Assembly (NCBI GenBank): GCA_907165135.1
Contig: OU015568.1
Coordinates: 806,001 to 870,000, forward strand
Reading direction: 5' to 3'
DNA: 64,000 bases
Source: Oikopleura dioica
Lineage: Eukaryota > Animalia > Chordata
Both the position numbers and the translations under genes were made by a program. Under the pieces are notes generated by a model that ran no database searches, had not been told where the DNA came from, and was given only the letters and a program-made list of their open reading frames with translations. Positions 37,621 to 47,903 of the stretch are shown here, in pieces. Position 1 is the stretch's first letter; each line of letters starts with the position of its first letter.

Positions 37621-39672
37621 ATGAAGATTCTTTCAATATTGGTAAACTTCATTTGATATTTAAATTTTGATTGGACCAAAAAGGCTCGAAACATGAATAT
37701 GATGCCTCAAAATTTCATCTCATTAAAAAAATTTCAGGCATTATCGTTGATAGAAGATATTAATGCTGGACGAAAGAAAAAGCTCGAAAGAAGAAAAGCT
37801 CTTGCAAAAGAGAAGATAAAGTTAGGGGCTTCTTATTTCGGAAAAAATCAAGCTAAACCCTAACCTAAGCCTGTTTTTCACCCTAACCCTAAGTTGTTAT
37901 CCATAAAAACCCCGGAAAAGATGCTGTTTTTGACAAAGAATCTATCGCGGCAGCTAATTTCAATTATTGCGGCAATTTTACGTCCACCTCTGGAGTTTTG
38001 GAGAGCGAGCATCCCTACAAGCCCGAGACAAGATGTAAGTGGTTCATCACAACTCCGCCGGGGACGAAAATAAAACTGACGCTCCTCAACCTCGACATCG
38101 AAGAAGAAAGATCAGACGATGGCCCAAAATGCTCAAATGTCGATATAACTCTTCCAAACTGCGATCCGCCGCTAGAGACTGAAAGTTGCGAGTGGGACTA
38201 TCTCCAGATTTTCGCCAAAGAAAAGGAGGAGGCGAAAATCTGCGCTTTGGTCGACCGAAATCGTAAATTTTTCAGAGCAGATTCAAAGTTTTTAGAATAT
38301 GACTACGAAGACGAAGGAGCTATTCCGTATGATTTTCTTTATGGAAAAGAGCTGGAAACGAACAATGTTGAGATTCGATTCGTGAGCGATGAGAAAGTAG
38401 AGTTTTATGGCTTTCGGCTCAAGTGGGAAATTTGGGAACACAGGGGTTGTGAAGGGATTAATGGATGTGATGAGAATGCGGACTGTAGGGATGTGAATGA
38501 CCAAGGAGAGTATGAGTGTAGCTGTAAAGAGGGGTTCGAAGGAGATGGGTTCTTTTGTAGAAGTGTTGAAATCAAGGAAGAGGATCTGAATCAAGATCGT
38601 GGACCGGCAGATTATCAAGCGCGATTTGTTCTTGGCGGATTTGATGATGATTATTCAGGAATGAGATTTCACATCTGCAAATATTCTTATGTACAAGGAG
38701 AGAAATGTAATGTCAAAATTATAGTAAACATGATTAAATATTATCGATAGACTGCAAGTAAAAAAATTATAAATACAACAAATTCAAACAATACTTATGG
38801 TTTCTCGCTGAAATCTCATCAAAGCAAAATTCATCTCCGAAGACTATTCTGCTCGATATGTTCCTCCTCAAGTTGACATGGACTCATCTGATAGTCCTGA
38901 TGATGCGGAAACTAACTATGATGATTACGACTATGCTCCAAAAGCTCGACCTCCAGTCAAAAACGATGATGTCGACTATTCAGCCCGAGAGTCAGAAGTC
39001 ATGATGAGCGAGCTCAATTCTCTCCAAGAAGAACAGAGCAGTCCAGCTGGTCCCGGGGGACCAGGAGGCCCAGGTGGATTTTCAAGGCCGATGGTGGATA
39101 TCAGCCCGAGCAATTTAAACCTCGTTACACAAGGGATGATGACAATAAGTCCCCCTAGTGTCGAAACTATGCCTAATTTGATAATTCCCAAAAATGAAAC
39201 ACAGGTAGAAAAGGGCTTCTTTCCAGGAATAAAGACCCTAAATGAAGACCCAGTCAATTATTACATCAATCTGCAAATCGCTTTTGAGCAAGCTACCGAG
39301 AGAATTCTCGGTGGCCGCGTTTCTCAGTGGAGAAATCGACCTTTTTTGGTCAAGAAAATGATCGTCAGGATCAAAAGCACGATCAAAAAGACCTTCTTTT
39401 ACGTCAAAGGGCCTTGTGATGTGTCCTTAGAGGACCAAACTTCTGGCGAATTCTTCGCTCAAACGGAGCAGAAAGTTCAAACCGTGGAGAAACTCGGAGA
39501 GCTGAGGGGCCTTTTCGCGGAGTTTGCTGCTGAACGCTTCAGAAAAGTAAGAAAAGTCCTGTTCATTCTGTCAAGAATTTTGTTTTAGGCAAGATGCAGG
39601 GGAAGATCAAAGAAAATCCTCGGCCGAATAAACAGGCTCCTCAGCTGGGCCGGGAAAATGTCCTCGAGATAA
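37621..39672 (+). CDS. Secreted CUB + EGF domain protein with acidic/low-complexity C-terminal region (ORF 38878-39588 probably the same gene)
   Basis: MKILSIL|ALS signal; CUB YCGNFTSTSGVLES...CKWFI...CEWDYLQI...IRFVSD...GFRLKW; EGF CDENADC...CSCKEGFEGDGFFC. The link to the downstream ORF needs an unverified GA donor. Confidence 0.8.
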
Positions 39673-39895: not shown

Positions 39896-40663
39896 TTAGT
39901 AGCCAGTAGCCGGGTAAGTCTCCTCACCAGTGTACGCCCATTCCACTCGAGTAGTTGGGTACCACCATTCGGGTTCTTTGACGCAATTGTCCGAGTCGCA
40001 ACATTGCCGGCAAACGGAATGAGTGTAGCCCGCCTCAGGTCGGCACTGCGTGTAGTGGGGGTTAGGGTTGCGGAAGTTATTGTTCATGTTGTTTTTGCAA
40101 GCGTCGGTCGATTTGCAGCCGGTGCGGATTTGCATGATCACTCCTTGGCGCTGGCGGATTTCGAGCTCGCAGGATTTTTCGTTGGCTTGGCACATCTAGA
40201 AAATAACTATTAAAATCTATCAGAGGTCATGGTAAATCAGAAATTCGAAAATATTTTTCATTTAGAAAATATTTTTAAAAATTCATTTTGACAAATATTT
40301 TCGTTGAGTTATGGTTTCTTGAAAAAAAATTGAAAAACTTACAACTTCTCGTCCAGAAGTTCCGCAAAGCTCAAAGCTATCAGCATCGCAAGTCCAGCAC
40401 TTGAGTGGCGTGGCATAAACTGGGCTTCCGTAAGCTCCGTAGTTGCCGCTCGCACTTGGGTTTTTCAAGTTTTGCTGGCTCGTTTGCTGAAATTGCTGCT
40501 GCTGCTGTTGATGGTGGTTTTGTTGTTGGTGAGCTTGGCTGTTGAAGTTCATGTTGTTGTTTTGAGCTGGGGCCGGGTTGCTGTTGGACATCGAGGCCAG
40601 CTGGGCAATGGCTTCGTGGTGGGCGCCATTGGCAAGAGCGAGGATAGTGGTGAAAAGCTTCAT
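39896..40663 (-). CDS. Secreted Ly6/uPAR (three-finger)-like protein with Q/N-rich N-terminus
   Basis: Signal MKLFTTILALANG; CWTC...C...CQANEKSC...TGC...AC...CRQCCDSDNC; one intron. Confidence 0.75.
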
Positions 40664-41061
40664 TTTTCTGAGAAAAAAATTGGAAAAGGGGATACTCGAT
40701 TATTTCAAGTTTCTGATTCGGAAAGAAAGAAGAGAGACTTTATAGGTAAGATGTGGAAAGTTGACATTTTCGGAAGTAGCGCGGTCAATTAATCGCGAAT
40801 TCGGGACCTTCAAAATTACATGATCGGTAAGCAGAAAAGGTGAAATTGAGAATTTCTCGACAGTCGCACCAATCATCGGCTTCTTCAGTGAATCTTTTTT
40901 CTGCTGTAATCAAACTCATTCAAATATGACCTGAAGAGTTTCGTCATAAATAGTTGCATCGTTTATTATACGATGACTTTTGCGAACCTGCGGCCAGATT
41001 ATATTTAACCCGACGCTGGGAAAGATAAGACCTTTCGTCAGTCTAAAGAGAAATCTCAGAG

Positions 41062-43826
41062 ATGGCGAATCTTTCACCAAATGTCGCGGGCTTAGGTACA
41101 GTACTTTCCGGGACTTGAATTGATTCTCATTAGCGAATGTGCCGAATATCTCCTGTACAACAAGTCCAACTTATACTTCAATCAAGAACGCATTTAACTT
41201 GGCATTTGGTCCGACAAATACTGGAAAAGGAAAGGCTAATTAAAATTCATCCTTGTAATAAACGAGGAAGCACAAGCATCATAACTAACCCAACATAATA
41301 TCATGCGAGTTCTTGATGATTATGGGTGCAATCCATGCGTGATAATCATGATTATTTTTCCTTTATAATGATCTCTATTGAAAGACTCTTTGAAGATCAA
41401 AGTTTGATTGATCAATGATAGACTTTTTCTCCAGTCTGGGAGAATTTAGTAGTCTTTTCAAAAAGACCTTTTTGATGTTTTTAATTAGCCAGCATTTTGA
41501 AAATTTCGGCGTCAATCCCGACTGCACCGACTTTGGTCCGATCCGTCAAAAGTACCCGCAAGGTGTTGCCGCTTCCTCTGGCGGGAGCGGTTTTTACTGG
41601 CAACTGACTGACTCTGGCAACGATTTTCGAGAGTCGTTGACATTCAAGTATCAAGTAAAGTTCGAAGATGGTTTCGAGTTTGTCAAGGGCGGCAAGTTAC
41701 CCGGCATCTACGGCGGCTCATCCGGCTGTGGAGGTGGAGCAAATGCAGCAGAACTCGGCTGTTTTTCGACTCGATTGATGTGGCGAGCAAATGGGGCTGG
41801 GGAAGTTTATCTTTACGCTCCTTACGATCAAGCTGATGGTTTTTGCGACCGGCCGAATTATCACTGTAACTTTGACTATGGAAATTCTATCGATAGAGGG
41901 TCCTTTTCTTTTACGCCTGGGCAGTGGTATCAGATCGAAGAAAGAGTAAAGGAAGGAGCTTAAATTAACACTGAAGAATCTTCACCGAAGATTGAAGATT
42001 TTAGGAAATTATAGAAGTTAAAAAGATTAAATTTTAAATCAGTAAGATAATTGCTTTAAAAAGCTCAGATAAAAGCTAAACACAGCCGGCTCTCTTGATG
42101 GTACTCTTATGCTATTTGTGGATAACATTCTCAGGATAAACCTCAACGACGTCAATTACCGAGTCGATCCTCTTTTGAAAATACATGGGGGCCAGTACTC
42201 GACTTTTTTCGGCGGTTCTTCTGCAGAATGGGCTCCGGTAAAGGACGAATATGCCCAGTTCCGAAACTTCGAATTTGCCGAGTTTTCTGATTCGCTTGAT
42301 CCAATCGTTGTCGATCCAACACGATGCGATAGAGAAGCGAATTCATGTCATAAAGCGGCAGAATGCGTTATTGAAAATGGAAGCAACATTTGCCGCTGTG
42401 TTGATGGCTGGACGGGCGATGGGACGATTTGTGTTGAAAATCCAACTTGTGAGAATATGCCTTGCCATGAGTTTGGACACTGCTCGATGAGAGATAATGT
42501 TCCGATTTGCTTTTGTAACGACGGATTTGCAGGAGATGGGTTTGCATGCGGAAATGGGGAGACAAGGAAAGGGTTTATGTTTGTTGATGGTTAGTTTGAT
42601 TGATCATTTCGATGATAAAGATTTTAAAATCGCCTAATTTTTTATAAAACATGGAAAAAAAATTCACCAGTATGCAAAGAATAAAAATAAATCTATTTAA
42701 AAATCAGAAGGTTTCTTATGGTTTCAACAATTTTTTCTTCAGAAATTTCCTGCGACGTTGAACCAACCTACACCGCAATCCGCGAAGCTTTCAATCTCCC
42801 CGGCAATCCTGGCAGCACCGGCCGTGACAACCTAGGCAAGCTCGAAACTTGCCCCGATGGCGAAACCACTCCAATCCGTCAACTTTACCCCCAAGGGGTT
42901 GCTGGCGGAGCGGGCGGAAGTTATTTCTACTGGGAGCTGCCCGCTGCTGGCGAGGACTACAGAGAGTCGCTTTCTTTTAAATACGATGTGATGTTCGAAG
43001 ATGGATTTGAGTTCGTCAAGGGTGGAAAGCTCCCAGGCCTCTTTGGTGGGAAAACTGGATGTTCGGGAGGAGCAGATGCTGCGGTGAAAGGCTGTTTTTC
43101 CACAAGACTGATGTGGAGAACCGGAGGCGAGGGAGAACTCTATCTCTACGCTCCCTACAATCAGGCCGATGGTTTCTGCGACCGAGAAGGCTACCACTGT
43201 AATTTTGATTACGGCCATTCCGTCCAGCGAGGAGCTTGGACCTTTGTCCCGGGAACTTGGTACAAAATCGAGCAGCGAGTTCATTTGAATACTGCCGGCA
43301 ATCTTGATGGGAAGATTAAGATTCTTGTGGATGATCAGCTTGTCCTCAGCCTCGATGATGTTAATTACAGAGAAGGAACAGGGATCAAGAAGTATTTTTT
43401 AATAAGTAACCCGATTTTAGACACTTCGCTTAGATAAGCATGCGTAACAAAGTTCTAAAAGTACCTCTCCATATAATCTCGATTCTTACATCAGTCGACA
43501 CTATTAAAATCAACGGCGCTCATTACAGCACCTTTTTCGGAGGATCTAGTAGCTCGTGGGCTCCTGTGAAGGATGAATACGCGCAGTTTCGAAATTTCGA
43601 GTTCAGCGAATATCTCGACTCGGATCGCGCCGCAGTTTCAGCCTCAAAGCATTGCGACAGGAAAGGATTTGAATTTTAATACTCAATAAGAAGGTTCCCA
43701 AGCTCAGAAGATTCTTCCTCAAATAATTCTTAAATAGGTTTTTAAATGGTTGCCAAGAAAATGAGGTGTGCTTGGAAATGGCTTCAGGAGACACTTGTGT
43801 TTGCCACACGGATTGTATCAACGATC
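41062..43826 (+). CDS. Tandem polysaccharide lyase family 14 (alginate-lyase-like) protein: PL14-EGF-EGF-PL14-EGF-like; ends uncertain
   Basis: Two domains, each with FEFVKGGKLPG, CFSTRLMWR, YLYAP, W..IE.RV and YSTFFGG..WAP; interleaved EGF-like Cys patterns. Confidence 0.85.
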
Positions 43827-44630
43827 GTAAGTAGCTGCGATATGCGTAAATACATATCATCATATGTATATCATGCTATTTATAGAAGCGTTCCAAGATG
43901 TATATTTGTCTTATATAACACATTATAACATATAATTATCCAGAACAAATTATTCAAAATAAATTGATCGGATCACTGAATCCTTGAATCCTTTATCAAT
44001 CAATGGATGTCAAACGAGCTCAGTTTGATTGAGTTTGTTACAATATCCTTACATCCAATTGATGGTATAATGATTGTAATACAATCATTGTATCATTAAG
44101 AAAAGGAAAGAAATAGTCTTTCTTCATGTTCTGCTCGTTTTTTTTCACTTCAATGAACATTGGCTAATTGGCTAATCAATCAAATGATAAAACAATATTT
44201 CGTTTTCTTTCTGGCGAAAACAATTTAGCCGGTTCTTTTTTGGCCTCACAAGCAACTTATTCTTGACTCAGATGAAGAAAGAGAGTATGAGTTAATTCAC
44301 GTGATATCCGAACTGGTATAGAGCAAGAAGTACTACTACCTAAGGTGTTCCAATTATCTTACAATTAATTCAAGGAGGGAGATGATCAAGAGCCGTGATA
44401 CGATGTAAGTAGATCTTTAATTTATTCTACAAGCGTTATTAATAGAGTCTTGATTATAATTCGAGTATTCTCGAAAGACGCCAATCAAGAAGAAATATAA
44501 ATGCTTAACTTACTGTTTTTCATTGGAAAGGATTTTTATTTTCTCAAGAAGAGAATAAATTTTCAATTATGCCGATATTTTATCGCACATATCAGCGAAT
44601 GCATTCCAAGCTACCGCGAGACAAAAGTTT

Positions 44631-44703
44631 TACCCTACCCGGGACTCGAACCCGGAACCTCTGGATTAGAAGTCCAGCGCGCTATCCATTGCGCCAGCAA
44701 GGC
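44631..44703 (-). tRNA. tRNA-Arg(TCT)
   Basis: 73-nt cloverleaf, anticodon loop CTTCTAA, T-loop GGTTCGAGTCC. Confidence 0.93.
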
Positions 44704-45299
44704 ATGTCCCTCGCCGCTAATTCGGGGGATTTGATTCTTGCTACTTTCAGCTTACCAGGTGTGGAATCCGCCTTACCGACTCTTTTCTGGCTATTCAGAT
44801 AAAATTATGAATTAGAATGTTTATTTTTCGAAAAAATGTACTCATGACTTGAAATAAAGGATCATTAACGATATTATTTATAGAATTTTAACGAAGAATC
44901 ATATTTCCAATTTGAACAAATTAATTTTCTTTATCAAATAATTCGTGAAATCAATAAAGTATTTTTTAATAATTCTCTCAAAAAGTTGTTTTTATACAAG
45001 CAAAGCAAAAACTCGCGATGAAAGAAGAATGTGGAAACGACCGGTAGAAAAAAAGGTTGAAAGGGCCGCGGGCGGTTTTCTTGACAGGCCTAGGTCATAT
45101 TCCACGAGAATTTTGTACATCAACACTACAATCAAAATTTTGATTGATTGACTTTTTTGATAAAATGAAACTTTAGTAAAGCGAATTAAATTGGAAGTAA
45201 TAAGAAATACATAATTTTTGAAAAATGATGTAAGTTTTAAAAAGAGAAAAAATCGAAGAAAATATTTCGAAAAGAAAATTACATTTATTTTTCAGTCGG

Positions 45300-47903
45300 A
45301 TGCAGAGAATATTTCGCCTCTTCGCGACGCCCTTAGTCGTGACCTTTTTCGTCATTTATTATAAAGAAGCTACATATGATCGAAACACCAAGGACTTCAG
45401 CTTTGATCCAATTCCTGACTCCGTAACAGTCGATACTCATGGAATCGCGGAGAACTTTGGGATCAATCCGGGCCCAGAAAAGAAGGAAAAGAAGAAAGAT
45501 GATGGTTTTGCGAGAGTTCAGGGAAGGAGTTAAACATTTCTAGTAGTAGGAGCCTTACTCATCGAATGAATTTTCTTTTGACGCAAAAATAACGGTCTGA
45601 TAACTTAAATTGCTCGACTATGGCGTGACGTAAAAGTCTGGACTTATGACGAGAGCCCCTTTTTTTAAGAAATAGTTACTAAGCAAAAGACGTAGTAAAG
45701 AAAGATGTTCCAACTCCGGGAAAAGGGGCAATTGGTTGAGCACGGGATGATGGATATGTCGGATGTAAATGTCAACGTGAAGGAAAAAATGGTACTGGAA
45801 GATAAACCTTTCAAAGTTGGCCTTTCCGAGAATGTGGATTACGCTGACGGTGTCTCATTTCCCACAGTGGAGGAGCTGGATTTAACTGTCGAGCAGAAAC
45901 AAAACCTGAGCAGTTTCCTCCATTCGCCGATGAACAGAAGAAGGCAGAAAAAACATGGGCAGGAAATTCCAAAAAGACGGTGGCCAGATCTGATCATTAC
46001 TGGTGCGAAGAAATGTGGAACGACGGCGTTGAAGATTTTTATGAACTATCATCCGACTTTTCAGGAACGTATTTACAAATTTTCTAGTGGAGGTATTATA
46101 AGTAATCGACGATACTGTATCGTTGATACTGTTTCTCGTTGATACTGTTTCGTTGATACTACTCTAAATTCGGTAAACCGAGAAACTAAAAATCTGTGAC
46201 TTTTAATTTTGAAATAGGTCTTATGGTTTCCTATGAAGTAATTTAATCTTTGACACTAACGAATTTTCAAAATACGAAAAAAGGACAAACCCGGCGAGCG
46301 TCATTTCTTCAATCGAGCCCCTAATTGGAAAAAAGGCTACTCTTGGTATTTGAGTGAGATGCCGCTTACTTACGATGATGAGGTACTGACTTTAATTGAT
46401 GTTGTATCTATCATTTTATCTTTGTTAATTTTAAGAAAAATTGGCAGATAGACAATGTTGTTTTTGAGAGATATTATATCATATATACATTTGATATTAT
46501 TCGATATTGAAAAAATTTCTCCTTTGTCAAGCTTTGATCAATCAACCCGGCTCAAAAATATTCTTTAGGTTTGCTACGAGAAAACTCCGGACTACTTCGA
46601 TCGACCATTTGTTCCAGAAAGAATGAAAGAACTACCGAACTCCGACAAAGTCAAGTTTATTCATGTCCTTTGCGATCCGGTCAGGAGAAGCTTTTCGCAC
46701 TTTTTGCATATGTTCACTGTTCAAGGTACAGTTTTATGAATGGATGCAGAAGTTTGATCTTGTTTTTAGAGCATGGAGAATGGGCGACAGGAGGATTCGA
46801 ATTTTTGTCCAAAAATTTCGGAGACATGCCGAAAGAACAAGCCTTTGGGGAAACGATTGAAATGGCCTTCAAAAATCTCCTCAACGGGAAAGAACTAATG
46901 ACACTATCAGATGACGAGATCAGATCTGCTGTCCGAGAATATTTCACCAAGTAAGTATACAAGTAGCTCATCATTGTTCCATACCAAAGTTATCAGACTC
47001 ATAGTATGAACTCATACCATTGGTGATAAGGCTTATCGCGCCGGAGGGCATGTCCCACATGGTCTAGGGGTAAGGATTTCGGATTTTCACTCCGACGGCC
47101 CGGGTTCGATTCCCGGTGTGGGAGGACTTTTTCGATTTTGAGAGGAGAAAAATTAAGAATAAGAGGGAAAAATTGATCAAAATGATATTTTATTGGGTTT
47201 CCTCAATTGATTTCAAAAACACTTTATCTCAGAATCGAAAAAGTGCTCCCACACCGGGAATCGAACCCGGGCCGTCGGAGTGAAAATCCGAAATCCTAAC
47301 CCCTAGACCATGTGGGACATGCCCCTACGGCGCGATAAGCCTTATCACCACTACTCATTTCTCAATTTTCAGATGGGACTTGAAGCCTGGCGATCCGAAT
47401 CGCGTCTTTCCACTCCGAATCCCTGACGCAATCCTTACTGGAAGTTTGTACTCGGTTCATATTTCCACTTATCTCCATTATTTTACTCAAGGTAATAAAT
47501 ATTTTCGTGACGAAGGGGAGGGGCAATTTCAAATTCAGATCGAATGCTATATCTTGACGCGACGGAGCTGATCGAAAATCCTGGAAAAAGTCTCCGACGA
47601 GTAGCTCAATTTATGAACGTACCGGCAACTATCGACGAGAACAACTTTTACTTTGACGAGCAAAAAGGTCAGTGGCAGGTCTTCTCGACAGCTAACATCA
47701 ATCATTTGTTAGGTTATTACTGCATGACGCCGCCAGTTGAGTCAGGACGTGCTTCATTCTGTCTCGGTTCTGAAAAAGGTCGCTCAAAGGACAAGGTGCT
47801 TCCCGACGAGTTGAAGAACCGAATACGGCGCTTTTACAAGCCGTTTTTAGAAGATCTAACGAACAAGTATTCCGGCGATAATTATGATCACTGGGACTGG
47901 TAG
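45300..47903 (+). CDS. Heparan sulfate 3-O-sulfotransferase-like type II membrane protein
   Basis: N-terminal TM segment; PDLIITGAKKCGTTAL (5'-PSB), ERHFF, YEKTPDYF, LCDPVRRSFS (3'-PB) and CLGSEKGR. Confidence 0.9.
47053..47124 (+). tRNA. tRNA-Glu(TTC), intronic, left copy
   Basis: 72-nt cloverleaf, anticodon loop TTTTCAC, downstream T-run. Confidence 0.93.
47246..47317 (-). tRNA. tRNA-Glu(TTC), intronic, right copy (inverted)
   Basis: Reverse complement of the left copy with one D-loop difference. Confidence 0.93.

Follow-up and report, generated by a model that had tools for sequence, protein, structure and literature searches.

The window, a 64,000-nt stretch of the Oikopleura dioica genome, contains at 41062-43826 on the + strand a single multi-exon gene with a product of ca. 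665-682 aa, in which the modules follow in the order PL14 (polysaccharide lyase 14) domain 1 (D1), two EGF modules, PL14 domain 2 (D2), and one degenerate EGF-like module. These limits, as drawn earlier by a model from the DNA letters (hereafter the sequence-only reading), coincide with the ATG of exon 1 and the end of exon 7. The features of the gene are:

41062..41095, + strand: exon 1, ATG and first 11 codons (MANLSPNVAGL)
41134..41233, + strand: exon 2, N-terminal lead-in of D1 (..NISC..TYTSIKNAFNL..), counterpart of the start of exon 5
41489..41951, + strand: exon 3, main part of D1 (Pfam PF21294, E 6.1e-45, profile 11-150)
41694-96 (Lys), 41766-68 (Ser), 41772-74 (Arg), 41808-10 (Tyr), 41814-16 (Tyr), + strand: catalytic codons of exon 3
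41952..42075, + strand: intron 3 (I3), GA..AG, phase 0, within D1 (ERVK / LNTAG)
42076..42589, + strand: exon 4, C-terminal strands of D1 (PF21294 profile 151-215), EGF module 1 and EGF module 2
42590..42742, + strand: intron 4, GT..AG, phase 1, separating the first and second PL14-EGF units, placed by sequence reading and phase arithmetic
42743..43375, + strand: exon 5, lead-in and main part of D2 (PF21294, E 7e-53)
43027-29 (Lys), 43099-101 (Ser), 43105-07 (Arg), 43141-43 (Tyr), 43147-49 (Tyr), + strand: catalytic codons of exon 5
43376..43494, + strand: intron 5 (I5), GA..AG, phase 1, within D2 (NYRE / VDTIK)
43495..43660, + strand: exon 6, C-terminal strands of D2 (PF21294 profile 183-215, E 7e-8), linker, and first Cys of the third EGF-like module
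43661..43737, + strand: intron 6 (I6), GA..AG, phase 2, placed by frame continuity
43738..43826, + strand: exon 7, third, shortened EGF-like module (six Cys including one from exon 6)
43827..43990, + strand: 3′ end, GTAAGT donor at 43827 and AATAAA at 43958

The ATG, peptide and GT donor of exon 1 are all kept in the related contig L016, and an in-frame stop lies 6 codons 5′ of the ATG. Exon 2, which was matched by tblastn with the relatives P0001 and P0002, is likewise kept in L016; its 3′ boundary is uncertain, and since the sole in-frame donor starting with G gives an intron at 41234-41488, this intron is probably of the GG..AG type. For I3, no other pair of boundaries preserves both the frame and the family alignment. 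The donor of I5 was set at GA, because splicing from the GT at 43390 would not keep the frame and GA recovers the alignment of the relatives, NYR(E/Q)/V. The sequence-only reading had reported one GA-AG intron; the type is present, but the number is three, plus probably the one GG..AG. Its observation that the introns of the two domains differ in position agrees with the model, in which the split falls behind ..ERVK (phase 0) in D1 and behind ..NYRE (phase 1) in D2. The 3′ end can be read in two ways: unspliced, the frame runs to a stop at 43833-35, and spliced, it continues in a short last exon from 43886 or 43944. The 43827 donor and the 43943/44 acceptor are kept in contig L019, but the 43885/86 acceptor is not kept there. 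The frame of every exon is open, and the gene model holds seven or eight spliceosomal introns altogether.

Membership of the PL14 family was read from Pfam PF21294 (Polysacc_lyase_14), with a curated cut-off of 27 bits, and four pieces of the gene exceeded this value:

41490-41952: 154 bits, profile 11-150 (D1)
42076-42591: 46.7 bits, E 4e-12, profile 151-215 (D1)
42718-43389: 179.9 bits, profile 10-181 (D2)
43497-43661: 32.9 bits, profile 183-215 (D2)

A chance origin of the matches is ruled out at these E-values. D1 and D2 are each complete over the profile and each split by one intron, as expected from the earlier description of two complete catalytic-type domains; their description as highly similar holds at 67-70% protein identity as far as similarity goes, but the domains are not near-identical. 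In a six-frame scan of the whole 64-Mb genome with PF21294, this was the sole locus, with the same four pieces. PL14 was clearly the top match in Pfam, in the PDB sequence search and in the fold search, the ESM Atlas search again gave PL14, and no profile assigned the domains to another family, in agreement with the family named from the letters.

The structure searches were run exon by exon. Exon 5 (D2) matched AkAly30 (5gmt) with E 1.5e-32 and the Chlorella virus enzyme vAL-1 with E 4e-7, and exon 3 (D1) matched 5gmt with E 7e-24 and 3a0n with E 4e-8, with the catalytic residues aligned. The AlphaFold2 model of the exon-5 part of D2 (210 aa, ending before the last D2 strands) reached a pLDDT of 85.8 and a pTM of 0.84, and Foldseek placed 5gmt first (E 1.5e-13, TM 0.76) and vAL-1 next; this model thus has the β-jelly-roll fold of the solved PL14 enzymes, while the fold of D1 was assigned from sequence alone.

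The five catalytic-site residues of vAL-1 (K197, S219, R221, Y233, Y235) are identical in D1 and D2 in the alignment and present in every close relative too, and the corresponding columns are nearly invariant across 263 family members (K 260/263, S 255/263, R 263/263, Y 258/263, Y 260/263). K197 and S219 of vAL-1 are reported to be essential (PMC13709232). The Arg and Tyr-x-Tyr belong to the active-site cleft of vAL-1 and AkAly30. Judged by these residues, both domains are apparently catalytically competent.

The EGF modules 1 and 2 of exon 4 were recognised by the Pfam profiles EGF_3 (42.5 bits, E 7.6e-11, cut-off 28.5) and EGF (23.2 bits, E 8.4e-5, cut-off 21.5). The third EGF-like module, encoded by exons 6 and 7, gave no Pfam match; it has six Cys and a short final loop, and its Cys pattern is kept in L019. 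The interleaving of EGF-like modules noted in the sequence-only reading is accordingly found between and after the PL14 domains.

Hydropathy reading of exons 1-2 and of every frame of 40664-41140 detected no hydrophobic core of a signal peptide, and neither a signal-peptide exon nor a transmembrane exon was seen when 40664-41500 and 43827-44700 were read in every frame. In exon 1 the highest Kyte-Doolittle mean over 9 residues was 0.46, versus 1.9-3.4 in the signal peptides of relatives; P0001 and P0002 have clear N-terminal signal peptides, unlike the Oikopleura gene, and L016 keeps the same signal-peptide-less start. A hydrophobic stretch near 44118-44176 was discarded as a part of the gene, being unsupported in the relatives. 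The hydrophobic tails of P0002 and P0016 were likewise rejected as a membrane anchor, since in the DNA a GTAAGT follows directly after the EGF module, which indicates intron read-through. No signal peptide was seen in exon 1 or the 400 bp upstream, and the product is therefore only putatively secreted or extracellular.

The gene was compared with related contigs. Where intron boundaries could be read there, I3 is again GA..AG in L016 and L017 and I6 in L019, each at its Oikopleura position, and the position and phase of I5 recur in the marine relative L007. The flanking host genes and tRNAs are in the same order in L016 and L019. At the protein level exon 3 is 88% identical to L016 and exon 5 is 85% identical to L019, with silent sites saturated in both cases; pN was 0.065-0.10 versus a pS of 0.84-0.87, and the EGF pair is kept in L017 and L019 with a dN/dS of about 0.1. 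The gene, including both domains, is under strong purifying selection.

It is highly improbable that the locus stems from microbial contamination or misassembly, or that it is a pseudogene in decay: nothing speaks in favour of this, the missing signal peptide being the only oddity, and against it stand the seven or eight spliceosomal introns, the GA..AG introns I3 and I6 at the same sites in other lineages, the shared order of host flanks and tRNAs, the open exons, and a pN far under pS. Contamination, already dismissed in the sequence-only reading, is excluded because the spliceosomal introns include the host-type GA..AG and the gene order is common to related contigs. The PL14 domains could also have lost their cutting activity and now function in carbohydrate binding within a matrix protein, but this is unlikely, as the five catalytic-site residues are intact in D1, D2 and every close relative and both domains are strongly constrained. 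Our main reading, held with a probability of about 80%, is that of a genuine gene of an O. dioica-type larvacean for a modular protein of ca. 670 aa with two predicted competent PL14 domains, each followed by EGF modules.

The PL14-EGF combination is not confined to this species. The closest relatives are marine metagenome PL14-EGF genes (P0001-P0004, P0010, P0016, P0122; contigs L005-L010 and L016-L021), which probably belong to other larvaceans. They form with both Oikopleura domains a supported clade (98/96), and share the lead-in motif, an EGF module after the domain, and a phase-1 intron after the EGF module; the PL14-EGF-PL14 layout recurs in L018 and L019, and a GA..AG intron in L007. 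When the L007 DNA and two neighbour proteins were compared with the Oikopleura genome, nothing or only 33% identity was obtained, and Pfam detected no marker gene among the L007 neighbour proteins. In L020, a THEG-family gene adjoins the PL14 gene, which points to an animal.

AkAly30, the PL14 polymannuronate/alginate lyase of Aplysia kurodai (PDB 5GMT), is the best solved relative by sequence and fold (36% identity). It shares with the Oikopleura domains the jelly-roll and the active-site residues GGK, S-x-R and Y-x-Y, as well as a Cys-Cys loop with Gly, which is two residues longer in Oikopleura; in this loop (C115, G118, C124) the Gly tunes polyM specificity (PMC8618178). Unlike the Oikopleura product, AkAly30 consists of one domain without EGF modules and is secreted as a digestive enzyme of about 30 kDa; in the gene tree the Oikopleura domains fall outside its mollusc clade. 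The glucuronan/alginate lyase vAL-1 (PDB 3A0N) has the same fold and Lys197, Ser219, Arg221, Tyr233 and Tyr235 in common with Oikopleura, but only ca. 21% identity, and it is a viral cell-wall-degrading enzyme with another N-terminal domain.

Fungal PL14 proteins, which are thought to target cell-wall β-1,4-glucuronan (PMC11325530), are 40-50% identical to the Oikopleura domains, but have no EGF modules and carry Ser/Thr/Gly-rich linkers. Two tandem PL14 domains occur in P0121 of the chytrid Homolaphlyctis polyrhiza as in Oikopleura; this duplication appears independent, because both P0121 domains fall within one chytrid-containing clade, far from the larvacean clade. Searching with the 621-aa two-domain chytrid protein for an annotated O. 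dioica protein returned fungi only.

PL14 as a whole occurs in fungi, molluscs, annelids, bacteria and algal viruses. Relatives were sought by word search, by an exhaustive search of 1.84 billion proteins and by 30 cluster look-ups. Among the best 120-150 of 2946 matches overall, the named relatives were fungi, lophotrochozoans and bacteria only, and deuterostome, ecdysozoan and cnidarian relatives were absent from these named matches, including the broad deuterostome orthologues which the sequence-only reading had listed as evidence against its proposal of patchy retention or horizontal acquisition. In the tree, the larvacean-type clade is set apart from the lophotrochozoan clade and lies outside the group of fungi and lophotrochozoans (95/93), beside a bacterial grade, and is nested inside no sampled donor group. 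The lophotrochozoan genes nest beside a Mucoromycota sequence, not beside the larvaceans. All eukaryote sequences form one group versus bacteria (93/86), and by this placement the gene belongs to a eukaryote-wide PL14 branch of fungi and some animals. A single animal clade was not rejected by the AU test (p = 0.174), and both origins proposed from the letters are compatible with these results.

In the first of these, a larvacean ancestor would have taken up a microbial PL14 gene from a bacterium or a fungus-like or other protist, to which introns, EGF modules and the internal duplication were added. The missing deuterostome, ecdysozoan and cnidarian relatives among the best-ranked named matches argue for such a transfer, as does the position of the clade next to the bacterial grade and away from lophotrochozoans, and for two carbohydrate genes of tunicates, CesA and GH6, a transfer is already accepted (PMC7464555, PMC3390340). 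The lack of nesting in a sampled donor group, the single eukaryote group, the AU result, and the sampling of named animals from the best 120-150 matches count against it, and we give horizontal acquisition somewhat less than an even chance.

Alternatively, PL14 could have been present in the opisthokont ancestor and kept in fungi, some lophotrochozoans and larvaceans, with many losses elsewhere. The unity of the eukaryote sequences and the unrejected animal monophyly suit this ancient vertical inheritance, as do the chytrids, Mucoromycota, Basidiobolus and Basidiomycota, all of which carry PL14, and an intron in an Owenia PL14 gene located 1 nt from I3, the D1 intron. On the other hand, numerous independent losses in animals would be required, the lophotrochozoans group with the Mucoromycota sequence instead of larvaceans, and the Owenia intron is weak evidence. 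Intron positions were set aside as too weak an indication of common animal descent, since the phase of the Owenia intron is another one, and neither the Owenia paralogue nor the Haliotis and Liolophura genes have this intron. Vertical inheritance is regarded as a lesser, though real, possibility; horizontal acquisition is slightly preferred, as the named matches included no other deuterostome.

According to the main reading, each domain would cleave a uronic-acid polysaccharide by β-elimination within the cleft of the jelly-roll, in the manner of AkAly30 and vAL-1, the likely substrate type being alginate/polymannuronate or β-1,4-glucuronan; the substrate itself is not readable from the sequence, because PL14 includes both alginate and glucuronan lyases. 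The protein would be extracellular, with the EGF modules as putative rigid, disulfide-bonded spacers, and a PL14-EGF unit duplicated within the gene may have given rise to its present layout. As to the biological role, the sequence-only reading had proposed digestion of algal polyuronates or remodelling of the mucous house. We give an even chance to the digestion of polyuronates that come from filtered algae and bacteria, and about half that chance to an action on the larvacean's own acidic matrix, in the house or at the surface, and the remaining probability falls to other roles. No lyase is mentioned in the Oikopleura house-proteome and single-cell atlas publications.

To our knowledge, polysaccharide lyases are very rare among animals, and the characterised animal PL14 enzymes are digestive alginate lyases from seaweed-eating molluscs. 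The literature search returned no publication in which either PL14 or alginate lyase is connected with tunicates, Oikopleura included, in line with the earlier statement that no characterised chordate member was known. What appears to be new is a constrained, apparently active two-domain PL14 in a filter-feeding chordate, the kind of enzyme itself being known. A large part of the particles in the ocean passes through larvaceans, whose discarded houses are rich in carbon, and the gene is a concrete candidate for their use or reshaping of acidic polysaccharides. It is also a further test case of transfer versus patchy loss in tunicates, whose cellulose synthesis is owed to a transferred gene.

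A more speculative combination, which we consider unlikely, is that larvaceans took a microbial polyuronate lyase horizontally, doubled it, added EGF spacers, and use it on a self-made polymer, e.g. an acidic, glucuronan-like substance or an oxidised cellulose in the house or house rudiment. If so, the gene would encode the first chordate polysaccharide lyase acting in the animal's own extracellular matrix, and would be the third transferred carbohydrate gene behind the tunicate lifestyle, after CesA and GH6.

The PL14 gene at 41062-43826 is set in eukaryotic sequence that is rich in introns and has a G+C content of about 42%. Its predicted product of about 665-682 aa has the architecture PL14-EGF-EGF-PL14-EGF, a new arrangement within a known enzyme family, here in an animal lineage where it was not expected. 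In Pfam searches of the exon-by-exon translation, four exon pieces matched PF21294 (Polysaccharide lyase 14) with scores well beyond the curated cut-off, and both the first (D1; profile positions 11-150 and 151-215) and the second domain (D2; 10-181 and 183-215) were complete. Two EGF modules were identified in exon 4 (EGF_3, E 7.6e-11; EGF, E 8.4e-5), and the shortened third EGF-like module after D2, with six Cys, had no Pfam match. When the entire 64.3-Mb assembly was scanned in six frames, PF21294 turned up at this one locus only. Searches and fold modelling used single exons.

Exons (E) and introns (I) of the PL14 gene. Predicted boundaries were corrected by hand against the sequence.
E1, 41062-41095, +, ATG and first 11 codons
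I1, 41096-41133, +, GT..AG
E2, 41134-41233, +, D1 lead-in
I2, 41234-41488, +, GG..AG, uncertain, as is the E2/E3 junction
E3, 41489-41951, +, D1 main part
I3, 41952-42075, +, GA..AG, phase 0
E4, 42076-42589, +, D1 end, EGF 1 and EGF 2
I4, 42590-42742, +, GT..AG
E5, 42743-43375, +, D2 lead-in and main part
I5, 43376-43494, +, GA..AG, phase 1
E6, 43495-43660, +, D2 end and first Cys of EGF 3
I6, 43661-43737, +, GA..AG, phase 2
E7, 43738-43826, +, EGF-like module 3

A GTAAGT donor directly follows E7, and the 3′ end is uncertain: the stop is at 43833-43835 if unspliced, or a short last exon begins at 43886 or 43944, with AATAAA at 43958. D1 and D2 are 67-70% identical. The sequence-only reading, which had proposed two PL14 domains combined with EGF modules, was right in both family and layout, and also in placing the internal introns of the domains differently, as I3 in D1 and I5 in D2 are not equivalent; the GA-AG intron it reported proved to be one of three (I3, I5 and I6).

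The gene belongs to the host. Metagenome contigs of related lineages (L016, L017, L019) align at 72-86% DNA identity and keep the gene order, i.e. a small Cys-rich gene head-to-head upstream, and a tRNA-Arg and a sulfotransferase-like gene downstream, with I3 and I6 as GA..AG introns at the same places. The GA..AG introns and the common gene order thus agree with the earlier argument against bacterial contamination. Between lineages, replacement differences were few (pN 0.065 in D1, 0.10 in D2) and silent sites saturated (pS 0.84-0.87), and therefore both domains are under strong purifying selection; dN/dS of the EGF pair was about 0.1. L019 has an additional 242-nt intron inside D2 (L019:1175-1416, after ..NFDYGHS) which is missing in the window, showing that introns have been gained or lost between closely related lineages.

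The nearest solved protein in the PDB sequence search was the Aplysia kurodai alginate lyase AkAly30 (5gmt; E 1.5e-32 for D2, 7e-24 for D1), and the Chlorella-virus lyase vAL-1 (3a0n) matched with E 4e-7 and 4e-8. Along the alignments, vAL-1 K197 corresponds to the Lys of GGKLPG, S219 and R221 to the Ser and Arg of CFSTRLMW, and Y233 and Y235 to both Tyr of YLYAPY, in D1 and D2 alike. Across 263 family members, and likewise in every close relative, these five columns hardly vary; K197 and S219 of vAL-1 have been reported to be essential (PMC13709232). The Oikopleura protein also has the Cys-Cys loop and the Gly by which specificity is tuned in AkAly30 (PMC8618178). An AlphaFold2 model of exon 5 (pLDDT 85.8) had 5gmt as its best fold match (TM 0.76, 36% identity), followed by vAL-1, the PL36 lyase Aly36B and a PL20 glucuronan lyase. 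We conclude that D1 and D2 are predicted competent beta-eliminating lyases for a uronic-acid polymer, on sequence grounds for both and on the fold model for D2. Since PL14 includes alginate lyases and beta-1,4-glucuronan lyases, the polymer cut cannot be told from sequence. The literature search found no paper linking PL14 or alginate lyase to Oikopleura or other tunicates, and no lyase is mentioned in the Oikopleura house-proteome paper or a single-cell preprint.

With three EGF modules the protein should be extracellular. Exon 1 (MANLSPNVAGL), the start of which is conserved in L016, lacks a signal-peptide core, and no upstream sequence provides one, whereas P0001 and P0002 among the relatives open with typical signal peptides; either a 5′ exon was missed or export is unusual. 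A membrane anchor in the relatives was rejected, as their hydrophobic C-terminal tails are intron read-through: in P0001, P0002, P0010, P0016 and L020:1190-1240 the last real codon runs into GTAAGT or GTAAAT. As a result, the ends of the public protein models are truncated and misleading.

Relatives were sought by a word search and an exhaustive search, the latter returning 2946 proteins at E ≤ 1e-3 and 101 at E ≤ 1e-30, with names covering only the top of the match list. Closest were marine proteins: P0004, encoded on L016, shared 87% identity with D1 across 103 aligned columns. Identity was 60-72% for P0001-P0003 and about 53% for P0122. Contig L007 carries a GA..AG intron and an intron at the position and phase of I5, and on L020 a THEG-family neighbour is 90 nt away from the PL14 gene. 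Together with the layout of L018 (below), this is evidence that these relatives come from compact animal genomes, and they are probably other larvaceans.

The tandem layout is not unique to O. dioica, as on L018:1-1326 the final part of a PL14 domain and a further PL14 domain are separated by an EGF module and an acidic Ser/Asp linker, and it is common to the L019 lineage, where the EGF2-to-D2 junction is visible. In a maximum-likelihood tree of 80 domains and 166 columns (support as bootstrap/SH-aLRT), the second L018 domain branches outside both Oikopleura domains. D1 groups with P0004 (99/89) and the position of D2 is weakly resolved, so that the duplication is older than the divergence of the lineages that L016 and L019 represent. 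The chytrid Homolaphlyctis polyrhiza protein P0121 (621 aa) also has two tandem PL14 domains, with a Gly-rich linker between them, which arose by a separate duplication of this enzyme domain.

Other matches were lophotrochozoan (Owenia, Haliotis, Babylonia, Nucella, Liolophura), fungal (many, from chytrids to Basidiomycota) and bacterial (cyanobacteria and others); the named, best-ranked of the 2946 included no deuterostome, arthropod, nematode or cnidarian, which is not proof of absence. The larvacean-type clade (98/96) was sister to fungi plus lophotrochozoans (95/93), the lophotrochozoans forming one clade beside a Mucoromycota sequence (94/91), and all eukaryote sequences were separated from a bacterial grade (93/86). 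Because the deuterostome record is empty among the named matches, we lean slightly towards horizontal acquisition by the larvacean line; however, forcing the two animal groups together cost 13.8 log-likelihood units and was not rejected (AU p = 0.174), and old inheritance with many losses is only slightly less likely. Intron positions do not help in deciding the origin: in one Owenia gene an intron lies 1 nt away from I3 in another phase, and it is missing from the Owenia paralogue and the Haliotis and Liolophura genes. Structures of animal PL14 genes (L011:4161-4373, L012:3001-3657, L013:2023-2787) vary widely, with three introns in Owenia P0007, none in the chiton Liolophura, and the whole domain in one exon in Haliotis.

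The head-to-head neighbour (39896-40663, -) has two exons; its product combines a signal peptide with a Gln/Asn-rich stretch and a Cys-rich tail resembling a Ly6/three-finger module, and had no Pfam match. The gene is syntenic in L016 at 72-86% DNA identity. The intervening 40664-40827 is non-coding, with stops in all frames, yet about 72% conserved with L016, and is probably a shared bidirectional promoter. Further upstream, at 37998-39670 (+), is a gene with CUB (E 7.5e-10) and EGF_3 (E 1.6e-8) domains, the C-terminal part of which is long and unassigned; since it has its own stop and AATAAA at its end, it is distinct from the PL14 gene. Just downstream of the PL14 gene, tRNA-Arg(TCT) at 44630-44704 (-) is 90% conserved in L019, and an inverted tRNA-Glu(TTC) pair (47053-47124, +; 47245-47317, -) lies among the exons of the sulfotransferase-like gene (45300-47900); L019 has PL14, tRNA and sulfotransferase in this same order.
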